Assembly (NCBI GenBank): GCA_904063045.1
Contig: CAJFCJ010000001.1
Coordinates: 2,046,001 to 2,110,000, forward strand
DNA: 64,000 bases
Origin: Dimorphilus gyrociliatus
Lineage: Eukaryota; Animalia; Annelida
Direction of reading: 5' to 3'
Both the position numbers and the translations under genes were made by a program. Below are positions 21,417 through 27,749 of the stretch, piece by piece; within the stretch, counting starts at the first letter, position 1; every line of letters begins with the position of its first letter. Under the pieces are notes generated by a model, which was not told where the DNA came from, did no database searches, and was given only the letters and a program-made list of their open reading frames with translations.

Positions 21417-23294
21417 CTAAGATGCGTTTTGGATGGAAGAAGCCGGTAGCACAGAGGGATTAACTCCCGAGTTTGTCAATCCGTTATTGTTTTGATGGTT
21501 ATTTCGTTTTCTTTTATCGTCAAACCTAAGTCGGTCCTTGTGAACGTAATCTTGAATATTTGGTAAACCCTTAACTATACATGCACTGAGCGCGCTTCGG
21601 TAAATATTCATGTCAGTAGCATCGTACCATTCCTCTGTATTAGGATCGTAACACTCTACATTGTAGATAGTTGTTACACCATTAAAACCTCCAATAGCGA
21701 AGACCATATCATCTATTATCTCAACACCGAAATTACTTCTTGGAGAGTACATATCCGCAATATTTGTCCAGGTATTCGTCTCGGAATTCCATCGTTCCCC
21801 ATTATTCATTCTTGTAACTCCGTTGAAACCTCCAAGTGCATAAATGAAGTTGCGGTGTGCTATAATTCCAACACCGGATCGCCTACTTCTCATTTCATTT
21901 ATCAAAGTCCATGTATCGGTTTTTGGATCATAAGCCTCAGCTGAACTTAAACACTCTACACCATTAAAGCCACCTGCAATGTATACCTTTCCATTTAAAG
22001 TTGTTGCACTAGCATCGGATCTTTGATGAATCATTGGAGCTATTAGACTCCATTGATTATCAGATGGAGTATAACGCTCTGCTGTATTTTGTCTGACGTG
22101 ACCATCAAAGCCTCCCATTGCATAGATACAACTATTCAGGACAGCTACGCTTACGTAGCATCGTCTCGCATTCATTGGCGCTACCTCCTTCCATGTGTGC
22201 TTTACGGGGTCAAAGCACCTAACCGAATTGAAATAATCCATACCATCGAATCCGCCCACAATGTAAATACAATAGCCAACAGTGGCACAGCCATGATAGG
22301 CCCGAGGGCCTCTATCCGTTGATTCAATCATAACCCACCGATCCGCCCTTGTATCATAAGATTCGATAACATTAGTAGGACTTCCACCACTCCATCCACC
22401 AACAGCAAAGAGAATTTCATGAGGTAGACGCGGTCTTGCTAAAGGATGGGAGAGATCTATCTCTTTTCCATCTTCCATATCGAGGTCGTAAAGAAATTTT
22501 AAAGTATCAATAACGAGAGGTCGACAATCTTCGTTATCCTTCACATATGGGTGAACTTTTACTGTCTCGACAAAGTATTGTGTGCTTAAAAGACCAAGAC
22601 GGATGCATTTCATGAGACTCATCATATAGCATTTCCGCTTTTGTGGATTATATTTAATCCATTTTAGGCAGGAATCGAAAACGAATTCTTCATTTTTAAC
22701 GTTCAATTCATCGGCCGACACTAGTTCAATCATTTGATCAGCTGTCAAGTATATAAATTCATCACTTTTCATAGCGATATTAACGAAATTCTCTAGTATA
22801 AATTGATAACAGTATTTTTCCAGTTTGTGACAAAAGTATCGCCTCGCAAAGTTCCTAATTCCAATAGCATTTTCGGCATCTATCTGAGAGCGAAGAAATT
22901 CGCAGCATTTCTTAATTAGACCCAAAACGTTAAACTGGTCAGCTGCAGGTAGCAGGCGTTCAACGTTCTCTGTACTAATTGTAACACCCCTCGTATAAGC
23001 ATATTCAATAATCAACGCCATTATATCTTTTTGAATGTTTGGTATCAAAACTTCTTTTTGAACGGATTCATTCATACCATTTGTAAATAGAGCTCTAAAA
23101 TAGGGACTGCAAGCACTAAGAATTGCCCTATGAACTGGAAAGCTCCCATCTTCCACCCTTATAACAGCATCGCATAATTGTCCTGATTTCCGCAATTCAT
23201 TTAAAACATTACAGCCCTCAGAACTTATTCTCTTATCGCAACTAACTGATTCATCAGAATTAGGGGTTCGGTTGAGTCGAGCTTTTTGACTCAT
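21417..23294 (-). CDS. KLHL10: Kelch-like protein 10 (BTB-BACK-Kelch), intronless
   Basis: BTB HRAILSACSPYFRALFT; KLHL10-type PRLPHEILFAVGGWSGGSPTN, YDTRADRW and RCYVSVAVL; six kelch repeats. Confidence 0.92.
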   Translation of the reverse strand: MSQKARLNRTPNSDESVSCDKRISSEGCNVLNELRKSGQLCDAVIRVEDGSFPVHRAILSACSPYFRALFTNGMNESVQKEVLIPNIQKDIMALIIEYAYTRGVTISTENVERLLPAADQFNVLGLIKKCCEFLRSQIDAENAIGIRNFARRYFCHKLEKYCYQFILENFVNIAMKSDEFIYLTADQMIELVSADELNVKNEEFVFDSCLKWIKYNPQKRKCYMMSLMKCIRLGLLSTQYFVETVKVHPYVKDNEDCRPLVIDTLKFLYDLDMEDGKEIDLSHPLARPRLPHEILFAVGGWSGGSPTNVIESYDTRADRWVMIESTDRGPRAYHGCATVGYCIYIVGGFDGMDYFNSVRCFDPVKHTWKEVAPMNARRCYVSVAVLNSCIYAMGGFDGHVRQNTAERYTPSDNQWSLIAPMIHQRSDASATTLNGKVYIAGGFNGVECLSSAEAYDPKTDTWTLINEMRSRRSGVGIIAHRNFIYALGGFNGVTRMNNGERWNSETNTWTNIADMYSPRSNFGVEIIDDMVFAIGGFNGVTTIYNVECYDPNTEEWYDATDMNIYRSALSACIVKGLPNIQDYVHKDRLRFDDKRKRNNHQNNNGLTNSGVNPSVLPASSIQNAS

Positions 23295-23666
23295 GTATAA
23301 ATGGCCGCTTTGGGGATGGTAAAAAATTGATGCATTTGCTTAAAGTTTATATCCGTTCATTAGCGGCGCTTTTGAATTCACTAATGACGTCATAAGAGAA
23401 ACAATTGAAATTCGCAGACGGGTGGAAGATCCACATAAAAGATAGTATATCAGATTTCTGTACTAAACCAAGCTGGGTTGGTAATTTAACCCTTTTTATA
23501 GCCTCCTCCCGCCGCGATTTTGTAGGTGTAAATAGGCCTATAAAACTATATACAAGAATAGTGGAGACTACGAGCCACTTGGGGACTAACGACGCAATTT
23601 GAAGCTCTAAGTACGCTATTACATCCGAAACCCGGGCTAGCAACGCCTCTACGTTCGTTTGGCAGT

Positions 23667-25055
23667 TTGTCTTCAGGCATGACGCGGATAGTACTATTCA
23701 GGGCTCTCTTACTACAAACCTTTTTCTATATAACTGTTTACAGTTCAACGTATAATTGTAACTCAAATGAATTTCTGGAACAAGCAAAGAAAGATTGTCC
23801 ATACTTTGGAGCAAGAGAGAGGAGATTTTGTATCCAGACGAAAATACGCGTATGCCGAAGGTGCCAGAGAGATCCGTTATACTCGGGTTGCGGTAAAGCT
23901 CCAAAAACTACATTTCAACCATCAATACAACCAATGGAAGTGAACGTAAAATCGTCTAATTCTGTTGATACCAGCGCTTACGGAGAGAAAATGAGGTACG
24001 TTTATAGGTCTATTATATTGTTTACATCCAGTACAATTGGTAGAGTTTCGTAAAACGATTTTTTTCCACTTATTTATTATTATAGGAAAAAGGTATACGA
24101 GACAATGCAAAAACTCCATAAAGTTCAACAAAAACTTACCGAACCGGTAAACCAAGTGCCAACTGGCGATTACATAATGAAACAGTTTCACGACGAAAAG
24201 AAAAAAGCTATCGAACAAAATAGAAAGCGTTATGAAACCAAAGGTTCACTTAATGTTAACAAACAAGCTTGTAGACCGTCTGTAAATGCTATTAAGGTTA
24301 ACAGCCATGTCTACTTTGATATAGCCAAATTAAGAACCGCTGAGAGAGTTGAATGGGCATTTTTAAGATTAAAGAGTAAAAGTGCAAGCTATGTTAAAAA
24401 GATTTTAAGGGCCAATGGGTGTAGGGCCAAAGACTCTGATCATGTCAGTTTAATATTGAAACCTAGCAAACTATCAAGACTTTGGTCAGGATTTAGGATT
24501 GAGGCGGACAAAACAAAGAAAAGTCTAAAAGTCGACACAGGACGGGCATTTAAAGCGAACAAATGGTATAGTATTCCTATGAAAACATCATTACTGGATA
24601 GGTGGATGGATAAAAATATAGAGAATTCAGGTGCTCAAATTCTTGTTAAAATTGGTCGATGTCGAAGGTTTTTGGCCTCGGATTTATTCCATATTCACGA
24701 TTGTAGAACTGGTCCAAGTAAATAGATTTTTTCTGTTATTATTAATATTATTACTATTCAACTAATTCCGCTTATAACTTTGCATTTCTTTGCAGTAAAA
24801 GTTCAAACGGTAACACCTATCTTAATACCAGAAAATGAAATATATTCAGTGAACAATGTTTTCATAAATACTGGAATATTTCCATTTATGGATATAATGG
24901 TAAAGGAGGATGATAATTTGAAAGAGGCACCCTTCTTTGAACAAAAAAATCCCAAGAGGCAGGCCCAATTAGAAGAGTATGTCTCTAGTGAGGATTCTAT
25001 ATTAAAAAAACACTTTTTACACCTAAAAAATAACCTCTTTAGAATAAATATTTAG
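23667..25055 (+). CDS. Secreted TGF-beta (myostatin/activin-type) propeptide protein lacking the mature cystine-knot domain, about 406 aa
   Basis: Exons 23667-23995, 24086-24717 and 24796-25055 join in frame. Signal peptide, CxxC motif, VYFDI...VEWAFLRL, KWYSIPMKTSLLDRW...NSGAQI and GIFPFMDIMV match prodomain motifs. No Cys in the last exon. Confidence 0.72.
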
Positions 25056-25837
25056 TTATTTTAATGAAAGTATTTACAAAGGTAACATATTTAACTAAAT
25101 GTGAGGTATTTTCCTTTTTTTTTTAGAGTTATAAAAAATCTTCATTGGATCGTGGACTGACGAAATATTGAAGAAATATAAACCACCTCTAAGCAGGAAG
25201 AAAAAAGTTCATCTTTTCTTTCTTCCCACAAACTTTGTGCCATGCTAATTTTGTAATACGGTTCTTTTTCCCTTTTTGTTCTTTTGTCTTCAACACTTGC
25301 AATGTAAACAATTATATTTTATCTTCTTTTTTTCTATTGTATCTTATCATCGTTAATCCAAGGATCTTTTTTATCTATTCTTTATTTTATACATGTGATA
25401 AACTATGTTGTATATACAGAATATGCATAGATTTAAAACTTATATAGTAATACACTAGTAATCTTTAATAGATAGCAAGCTTACTTTGCAAATCATTCAT
25501 TATGTATTTTGTATAGAACATCATAAAATCTTAGACATATGCCCATTTTGGGCTGGAAACAGGATAATGACATAATTTAATTATTCATGTACACATAAAA
25601 ATTAATCTATAGTTATTTTTAAACAAACTTAATGTAGTTCAATTGATATTTATACATTTTATCCTTGTTCCGAACCAACTAGAGTTCGAACCTAATTCTT
25701 GCCATTGACAATCACGTAAGAGATAACTTATCTCGTCTATTTAATAGGTACCATAGCAGCTTTCGACGATATATAATACTGTAAGCCTATCGGATATAGT
25801 TCAAAGTTCCAAGTACTGTTAAAAAGACTTCTAGATC

Positions 25838-27108
25838 ATGTCAACTGAGGAGTTGAAAAGAATCGCTTGCAAGGCAATTGATGATAATGCAGCTAAATTA
25901 AACGGTGTTAGTCAAGAAATATGGTCTAAACCAGAGTTAGCTTTTGAAGAGGTTGAAGCTCATAAGTTACTGACTGAATTTTTGACTGATCAAGGTTTCG
26001 AAAATGTCGAAAAATCTTTTTTAATGAAAACTGGTTTTAGAGCACGAGCCGGCAATCCTGATCATCAAAGACATGTTGCAATATTATGCGAATATGATGC
26101 TTTACCTGAAATTGGCCATGCATGTGGTCATAATTTAATTGCCGAAGCTGGAGTGGGAGCTGCTATTGGCGTTCTAGCCGCTATTAAAGCTGGAGCAAGA
26201 GGCCGTGTAAGAGTAGTTTCAATTCATTTTACTTTTAACGGTTTTAAATGGTGAAATAATTAATTCTATAATATTTGTATACATAGGTGTCAGTATTTGG
26301 GACTCCAGCTGAAGAAGGCGGCGGTGGTAAATTACCTTTTATTGAAAAGGGTCTATTCAACGACGTCGATGCTGCTATGATGGTACATCCGTGCTTCTTC
26401 GATTCATTCAAGCACGAATTTTTATCTATTAAAAGAATACAGGCGACATTCCATGGAAAAGCTTCGCATGCCGCAGCCTCACCATGGGAAGGTATCAATG
26501 CCCTGGACGCTGCTGTAACGGCTTACACGTCAATTTCTGCTCTAAGACAACAAATGCATCCAAAGTGGAAAGTTCATGGTATTATAAGCGATGGCGGAGT
26601 TAAGCCCAACATTATACCAGAGAGGAGTCAAATTGAATATTATCTTCGAACCCCAACTGAAGTAGAAATGAAAACTTTAGAGATGAAAATACGAAACTGT
26701 ATAGAAGGAGCCGCCCTTACTGCTAATTGTACAGTGGAAATAAAGCAGCTACAGCCATCGTACAAGAATATGGTTTTTAATGATGTTCTAGTTAACCTAT
26801 TCAGCGAAAATGCTAAGGAACTTGGCTTAATTGGAGAAGAATTCGATCCCAGTAAACCTACAGGTTCAACCGACATGGGAAATGTATCACACGTCGTTCC
26901 GAGTATTCATCCCATGTACGCTATACCTACGAAAGCTTTCAATCATACAAGAGAATTTACAGATGATGCTGGAAAAGAATATTCTCAGGCACCGACAATC
27001 CTCCAAGCTAAAGCTATGGCAATGACCGCCATTGACCTGTTTGAAAATCCCAAATTGCTACCAACGATTCGTGAAGATTTTGAAAAGTACAAGACTTTAT
27101 CATCTTAA
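25838..27108 (+). CDS. PM20D2: Peptidase M20 domain-containing protein 2
   Basis: PELAFEE, CEYDALP, HACGHNLIAE, GTPAEEGGGGK, HAAASPWEGINALDA and GSTDMGNVS; intron 26207-26286. Confidence 0.93.
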
Positions 27109-27749
27109 TAATGCTTGTCTTTTTTTTTCTCTTTTAATTTCATTATAAAACACAGATTACTTATATAAAAAATAAAAGAGAATATAAAAAAGAAATGTTT
27201 TATTTTCTCTACGTAGTTTTTTTTTTGTTCTGATGTTTCGATAAAGCATATAACCTAAAAAACACAAAAAGAACAATATTTAACTACTTGTGAGGAGGGG
27301 TAGGTCAAGGTCGGATAGATTGAATACAAACTTGAAGGTCGTTTCATGTCTTTTTTTTGCATTTATCTCTTATTCTACTAAACTTTATATTACGTAATCA
27401 AGTGGACAGAGCTAATAGTAATACGCAATACAATTGATCTTGGTCTATAACTAGTAACAAATTACACATTGTACCTTCAAATAGAATCTAAACAACTAAA
27501 ACTGGGAAACAATTGTTATTTGAGGGAAGGAAGATGCCGTAGGATTGGGATGGAAGGGCAAAAAGTAAAAAACTGGGGGCGGCAGTTTAAATTTGTTATG
27601 TTTTCTTTATTATTATTCAACGTCATCAATAATATTGCGCACGATATTCACTATAGACCTAATTAAAGGAATCTGGTTCTCAGCTTAAGCGTAAATACTA
27701 AACAGCGGTAGCTTTATTTTCGCCCACCTTTCCCAAAAGTTTACATGAG

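Follow-up and report, generated by a model that had tools for sequence, protein, structure and literature searches.

DgyrCDS556 of the annelid Dimorphilus gyrociliatus encodes a secreted-type protein without a growth-factor domain and with a probable TGF-beta prodomain fold

DgyrCDS556, a gene of the annelid Dimorphilus gyrociliatus, is a real gene, expressed and spliced, whose product is a secreted-type protein without a growth-factor domain and is probably a stand-alone protein of TGF-beta-prodomain fold. It lies in a window of 64,000 nucleotides, the whole stretch of DNA analysed here. Language-model features, structure neighbours in the ESM Atlas and hallmark motifs collinear with those of pro-myostatin (GDF8) make a prodomain the best reading of the predicted fold, which is likely to extend over residues ~100-365, and descent of the gene from a TGF-beta-family ligand precursor is, a little less firmly, also probable. 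As an overall explanation, we lean slightly towards a secreted, basic dinophilid protein of prodomain fold that has no growth factor.

Gene model, expression and conservation

A word search with exon 2 identified the gene as DgyrCDS556 (P0001, 387 aa, 100% identity); its NCBI entry is unnamed and carries no precomputed Pfam domain. RNA-derived contigs placed on window positions 23300-27300 define three introns and hence four exons, with joints at ~23995>24086, 24717>24796 and 24987>25127 and GT..AG ends in all three. Each joint is present in the X6 contig (0 mismatches) and in the X3 contig (~9% diverged), and the third is additionally found in the X2 metatranscriptome contig. X6 and X3 are not registered as RNA and were taken as such because their contigs lack the three canonical introns. 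A previous sequence-only reading of this DNA had proposed three reading stretches with GT..AG borders; these exist and the first two introns were placed correctly, but the joint 24987>25127 adds a fourth exon. Its start at a TTG (23667) gives way to the first ATG at 23679, and instead of a 406-aa product reaching 25055, the RNA contigs yield a spliced main product of 382 aa with the C-terminus ...KNPKRQAQLEEYVSKL (...EEYVSKL) and a stop codon at 25132-25134.

On the forward strand, exon 1 thus runs from the start ATG to the first joint (23679..23995), followed by intron 1 (23996..24085, 90 nt, skipped in X6 and X3, with borders conserved in the orthologous contig L002), exon 2 (24086..24717, residues 106-317, matched in a dinophilid relative by the 78% identical ORF P0002), intron 2 (24718..24795, 78 nt, likewise skipped in X6 and X3), exon 3 (24796..24987, residues 317-381), intron 3 (24988..25126, 139 nt, its joint in X6, X2 and X3) and exon 4 (25127..25454), which holds two coding residues, the stop TAA and then 3' UTR. 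The database model P0001 uses an alternative donor for intron 3 at 24975, 13 nt upstream, and ends in ...EEVIKNLHWIVD, so that its last 10 residues read VIKNLHWIVD as against the transcript-supported YVSKL. This donor was rejected for the main isoform, since transcript contigs favour the one at 24988, and so was the three-exon read-through C-terminus, since the contigs splice 24987>25127. Three versions of the C-terminal tail can therefore be written (main splice, P0001 and read-through to 25055), none of which contains a growth-factor domain.

Three Logan contigs from the relative (L001-L003) follow the window collinearly, with 79% of DNA positions identical, and preserve its synteny, with a Kelch gene upstream and M20 and ENPP genes downstream. 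The orthologue on L002 keeps all six splice borders, start, stop and 10/10 cysteines, at an amino-acid identity of 290/383 (76%). Comparison of the two genes by the Nei-Gojobori method gives a dN/dS of 0.18 at a dS of 0.83; the ratio is lowest (0.086) in residues 321-382, encoded largely by exon 3, and highest in the poorly conserved linker of exon 1 formed by residues 76-105. DgyrCDS556 is under purifying selection with respect to this relative. Beyond DgyrCDS556 itself, the word search had no matches other than P0002 and P0003, exon-sized ORFs of the relative, and a phmmer search of 1.84 billion representatives with P0001 as query returned two matches only, both of them ORF fragments of the dinophilid relative. 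By these sequence searches, the gene appears only in dinophilid annelids.

A secreted-type protein without a growth-factor domain

Residues 4-21 have a mean Kyte-Doolittle value of 1.71, so that the protein begins with a hydrophobic stretch, in agreement with the signal peptide claimed earlier, and the signal-peptide-like residues 1-22 are encoded at 23679-23744 in exon 1. The same exon encodes the six-Cys module with a CxxC that the earlier reading had described (C27-C71, 23757-23891), with cysteines at 27, 40, 51, 59, 62 and 71, among them C59-R-R-C62. Its spacing, C-x12-C-x10-C-x7-C-x2-C-x8-C, is conserved and all six cysteines are kept in the orthologue; no family match was obtained for the module in a Pfam search of the sub-region or in an Atlas search of residues 20-105, where the best score, 0.77, is uninformative. 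The protein is strongly basic (70 K+R versus 38 D+E) and contains no N-x-S/T sequon for N-glycosylation.

All six frames of L001-L003 and of the entire window were scanned for a TGF-beta cystine knot with the patterns [LIVM]-x2-P-x2-[FY]-x4-C-x-G-x-C (PS00250-type) and C.G.C...CC...C.C, and none was found. The earlier statement that no knot is encoded ahead of PM20D2 thus stands; transcripts likewise end before that gene. The contig ends lie at 25381 (X6) and 25454 (X3), after which depth is ~0 up to ~25795, at the start of the next gene, leaving the DgyrCDS556 transcript ~350 bases short of PM20D2, the M20 peptidase (PM20D2-like) gene read from 25838 on the forward strand, itself followed by a neighbouring ENPP-type phosphodiesterase gene from 27750. 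Stops are abundant in all three frames of the 780 bases ahead of PM20D2. Within the protein, the stop falls 11 residues past a conserved dibasic string, NPKR (residues 368-371, 24948-24959, exon 3), and the canonical ligand layout of an R-x-x-R site followed by a PF00019 knot is not present. The assertion that R-x-x-R is absent was too broad, as four such strings occur (RERR 46-49, RVCR 57-60, RCQR 61-64 and RCRR 297-300, of which RCRR is kept in the relative and RERR is not), but it holds for the boundary between prodomain and growth factor, where none is located.

These data bear on the possibility that DgyrCDS556 is a full ligand gene that has decayed or been mis-assembled, its knot exon missing, lying further downstream or lost by recent pseudogenisation. 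NPKR does sit where a processing site is expected, and Dinophilidae are reported to have lost TGF-beta ligands (PMC7854359). Against this, the window contains no N bases, and the independent contigs of the relative are collinear with it through PM20D2 and ENPP. Transcripts of three runs stop at ~25381-25454 and the stop codon is conserved. With no knot signature in any frame, and with a low dN/dS that falls to its minimum in the C-terminal part, this explanation is highly improbable and close to refuted. Spliced leaders, trans-splicing and operons have been excluded for the D. gyrociliatus genome (PMC7854359); the id of DgyrCDS556 and the names of ligands are both absent from its supplements.

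Evidence bearing on a TGF-beta prodomain fold

Sequence and profile searches give no support to a prodomain. The earlier reading had named the lack of a profile match to TGF-beta propeptides as grounds for its own refutation, and by that measure its claim fails: with the cut-off relaxed to E<=10, Pfam PF00688 still produced no row, whether for the whole protein, the three exons, five sub-regions or exon 2 of the orthologue; the remaining Pfam rows are sub-threshold noise alone (Duc1, DUF294_C, CAMSAP_CC1). Searches of PDB sequences by phmmer, with the protein and two parts of it, and by profile gave chance rows only (imelysin, E 0.34; Avh240, E 0.93).

ESM Atlas features point in another direction. 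The whole protein scores 0.95 (197/256 features shared) with an arthropod 'protein anachronism' cluster, 56% of whose members carry PF00688, and the next rows are prodomain fragments of Lefty2 and TGF-beta1. With signal peptide and Cys module removed, residues 100-365 alone still reach 0.95, now with a cluster from arthropods named 'TGF-beta propeptide domain-containing protein' (87% PF00688), and give 11 hits >=0.9 in the TGFb_propeptide family set, the best scores sharing 194-197 features. A first hit at 0.95 is reached by ~1 in 100 shuffled proteins, and while the ten best family-bearing hits, for the whole protein as for residues 100-365, are all TGFb_propeptide, ten hits sharing one family is the outcome for one third of shuffled proteins.

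Structure neighbours of the Atlas ESMFold model (mean pLDDT 0.57), restricted to residues 100-365, include Anachronism (TM by query 0.50 over residues 133-360) and TGF-beta precursors (TM 0.47, within residues 133-361), along with bacterial and viral CBM96/DNRLRE proteins (TM 0.43-0.52 over residues 156-365); one bacterial CBM96 cluster is labelled PF00688 as well. TM values of about 0.5 or less on a model of such modest pLDDT weigh against the prodomain fold. To CBM96/DNRLRE the likeness is structural only, Pfam having no row for PF24517 in the DgyrCDS556 protein. By the tool's own reckoning, Atlas features and Atlas structure neighbours count as one source of evidence. AlphaFold2 run with the two-species alignment reaches a pLDDT of 35 for the whole protein and 31 for residues 150-365, that is, no confident fold.

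The motif strings quoted in the earlier reading are all present in the protein, with KKVYETMQKLHKVQQKL at 107, KWYSIPM at 265, GIFPFMD at 343 and NPKR at 368, and the myostatin strings that it had cited are truly contained in the pro-GDF8 chains 5NXS, 5NTU and 6UMX. The GDF8 hallmark motif aligns to W266-I291 (24564..24641, form W.SI..KT.L..W......N.G..I) with a BLOSUM62 score of 45, against 23 +/- 3.6 for shuffles, of which 0/3000 reach 45 (z ~6); this is the best score among 196 ORFs of the window. The GDF8 PF motif finds its best match at G343-E354 (24873-24908, exon 3), between the first motif and K-R 370-371, at a significance of about 0.01-0.05 (35/3000 shuffles of the downstream segment reach the score). 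The hallmark motifs occur in family order, W..(D/P)V/M..x..W......N.G followed by PF(L/M) and lastly a basic site. Because the motif was picked post hoc and a rough pairwise estimate for the whole prodomain gives E ~0.03, we treat the motif evidence as supportive only.

Comparison with pro-myostatin structures (PDB 5NTU, 5NXS, 6UMX) shows both the likeness and its extent. Arm-domain and PF motifs align in the same order, and a P-K-R string follows the PF motif at a similar distance in both proteins. Unlike GDF8, DgyrCDS556 has neither a growth-factor domain nor a boundary R-x-x-R, carries ~31 extra residues between the motifs, including a conserved C298...C312 pair, and separates its CxxC from the first helix by 45 residues where GDF8 has about a dozen; similarity over the full length is not statistically significant. 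In TGF-beta1 LAP (CSC) and activin A (CEQC), cysteines come directly after the strand that follows the N-x-G motif, a place that C298 would occupy in DgyrCDS556, and VEWAFLRL (194-201) would resemble the 'A-E-L-R-L' strand of LAP. As a difference from TGF-beta1 LAP and the activin A prodomain, DgyrCDS556 contains no RGD, and the Atlas rows nearest to it among such prodomains consist of fragments. The assignment to a myostatin/activin type is not upheld, the nearest clusters being arthropod Anachronism-type proteins, Lefty and TGF-beta1 fragments; the prodomain reading itself gains from Atlas features, structure and collinear motifs, but not from any sequence-profile match.

Two further explanations have to be weighed against a prodomain. 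One is a lineage-specific secreted protein with a generic jelly roll of CBM96/DNRLRE type that binds glycans or matrix, plays no part in TGF-beta signalling and resembles prodomains in fold only. It draws on TM values to CBM96/DNRLRE as high as those to TGF-beta hits, on the very basic character of the protein, and on the absence of furin site, ligand and any detectable sequence homology to TGF-beta precursors. However, the feature search returns animal TGFb_propeptide clusters only, with CBM96 absent from its hits; the W..N.G and PF motifs, which are animal-specific, occur in the correct order; and two candidate helices would lie ahead of the sandwich, an order known from prodomains, whereas the bacterial CBM96/DNRLRE proteins are multidomain proteins without N-terminal helices. 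We consider this reading rather unlikely. A dinophilid orphan protein with a fold of its own, for which the language-model hits, the low-TM structure hits and the motif match would all be chance, is less probable still: in its favour, sequence and profile methods all come up blank, no confident fold emerges from AlphaFold2, and shuffled proteins reach comparable feature results at the rates given above, but three partly independent signals converge on one family, namely features (whole protein and part), Atlas structure, and the z ~6 motif together with a collinear second motif.

Proposed role and further features of the locus

Under the favoured reading of a prodomain-fold protein, a signal peptide and the small six-Cys module would precede a body of residues ~100-365 with TGF-beta prodomain fold. 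The body would begin with two helices parted by a proline-containing loop (candidate alpha1, loop and alpha2, 24086-24239 in exon 2, ahead of most of the candidate arm domain), continue as the 'arm' beta-sandwich, and close with the strand motif GIFPFMD, the putatively vestigial dibasic NPKR and 11 further residues. An isolated GDF8 prodomain inhibits its ligand. By analogy with this behaviour, we propose that the DgyrCDS556 protein might bind a TGF-beta-family ligand encoded by another gene, or hold such a ligand on matrix or heparan sulfate, for which its basic charge would be suited, and would so act in trans as a latency factor or trap. A role as ligand trap, antagonist or trans-chaperone is an inference only, drawn from that analogy.

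The closest known counterparts are the arthropod Anachronism (Ana) and 'TGF-beta propeptide domain-containing' clusters (352 and 370 aa), which supply the best matches in features (0.95) and structure (TM 0.50). Members of Ana-type clusters are secreted, of similar length and carry PF00688 without a TGF_beta domain (PF00019), a layout that DgyrCDS556 parallels with its hydrophobic N-terminus and a propeptide-like domain as the one recognisable domain. The two differ in that DgyrCDS556 has no Pfam match, which 56-87% of Ana-type cluster members have, and in that Ana is a glycoprotein whereas the DgyrCDS556 protein has no N-x-S/T sequon; homology to arthropod Ana was not detected by phmmer among the 1.84 billion representatives. 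Ana has remained an orphan since 1993. In Drosophila, glia secrete it as a glycoprotein that maintains neuroblast quiescence (PMC10913833, PMC7179833), and the perlecan Trol is its presumed antagonist (PMC7179833); the reviews consulted call it 'a secreted glycoprotein' only, with no mention of a TGF-beta link. Activin- and BMP-type signals promote neuroblast proliferation (PMC11195991, PMC5829083), so the quiescence imposed by Ana against such signals fits trans ligand binding, and the mechanism suggested here for DgyrCDS556 could by the same analogy account for Ana's restraint of arthropod neuroblast proliferation.

Growth-factor-less propeptides also occur in choanoflagellates, which encode TGFb_propeptide without a TGF_beta domain (Richter et al. 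2018, PMC6040629); those are detected by Pfam, whereas DgyrCDS556 is not. The claim of an undescribed class hence falls, as prodomain-only proteins exist both in arthropod databases and in choanoflagellates (PMC6040629), and DgyrCDS556 would be a divergent new example of stand-alone propeptide proteins already known in Anachronism-type and choanoflagellate form. What is new is that it comes from annelids, that it has diverged to an extreme degree, that it carries the six-Cys module and that it occurs in Dinophilidae, whose set of TGF-beta ligands is reported to be reduced (PMC7854359). If fold and trans role are correct, an animal with a pared-down ligand set keeps a growth-factor-less prodomain under selection, and the link to arthropod Anachronism would suggest that prodomain-only regulators arose repeatedly. 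A bolder and unlikely extension is that dinophilids retained, as genes in their own right, the prodomains of ligands that they had lost, DgyrCDS556 among them, that these act in trans as latency factors or traps for the ligands still present, and that together with Ana these form a widespread unrecognised class of protostome TGF-beta regulators; this would give Ana a mechanism. Should the fold be wrong, DgyrCDS556 is another lineage-restricted secreted protein. The case illustrates that a conserved, expressed gene can escape Pfam and phmmer over billions of proteins and yet be placed by language-model features.

Several further observations concern the locus itself. A 63-nt block (24954..25016), the longest perfect run in the locus, and a 31-nt block (25120-25150) are identical in both species, against 79% identity overall and a dS of 0.83. 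Together they take in both intron 3 donors (24975 and 24988), 29 nt of the intron itself, the acceptor and adjoining exon 4 sequence, and may represent a conserved alternative-splicing or RNA element. All three possible tails, from the main splice, the upstream donor and intron retention, are open in both species. Well-conserved blocks also lie in the 3' UTR (25176-25310), which is otherwise poorly alignable, for instance around ACAAACTTTGTGCCATG and in a T-rich block at 25249-25300.

Upstream, on the reverse strand, lies an intronless BTB-BACK-Kelch (KLHL-type) gene (21417-23294, 625 aa), of the same length and position in contig L001 of the relative. A 4786-nt X6 contig (record 19; window 23300-23993) joins this divergent Kelch gene, a 385-nt spacer and DgyrCDS556, and reflects either overlapping transcription from a shared promoter region or UTRs merged by the assembler. 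Near-identical fragments of DgyrCDS556 and PM20D2 (0-3 mismatches; window 23789-23978 and 24796-25363) turn up in two metatranscriptomes, one from coral (X1) and one marine (X2), pointing to the presence of Dimorphilus or a very close relative in these samples.
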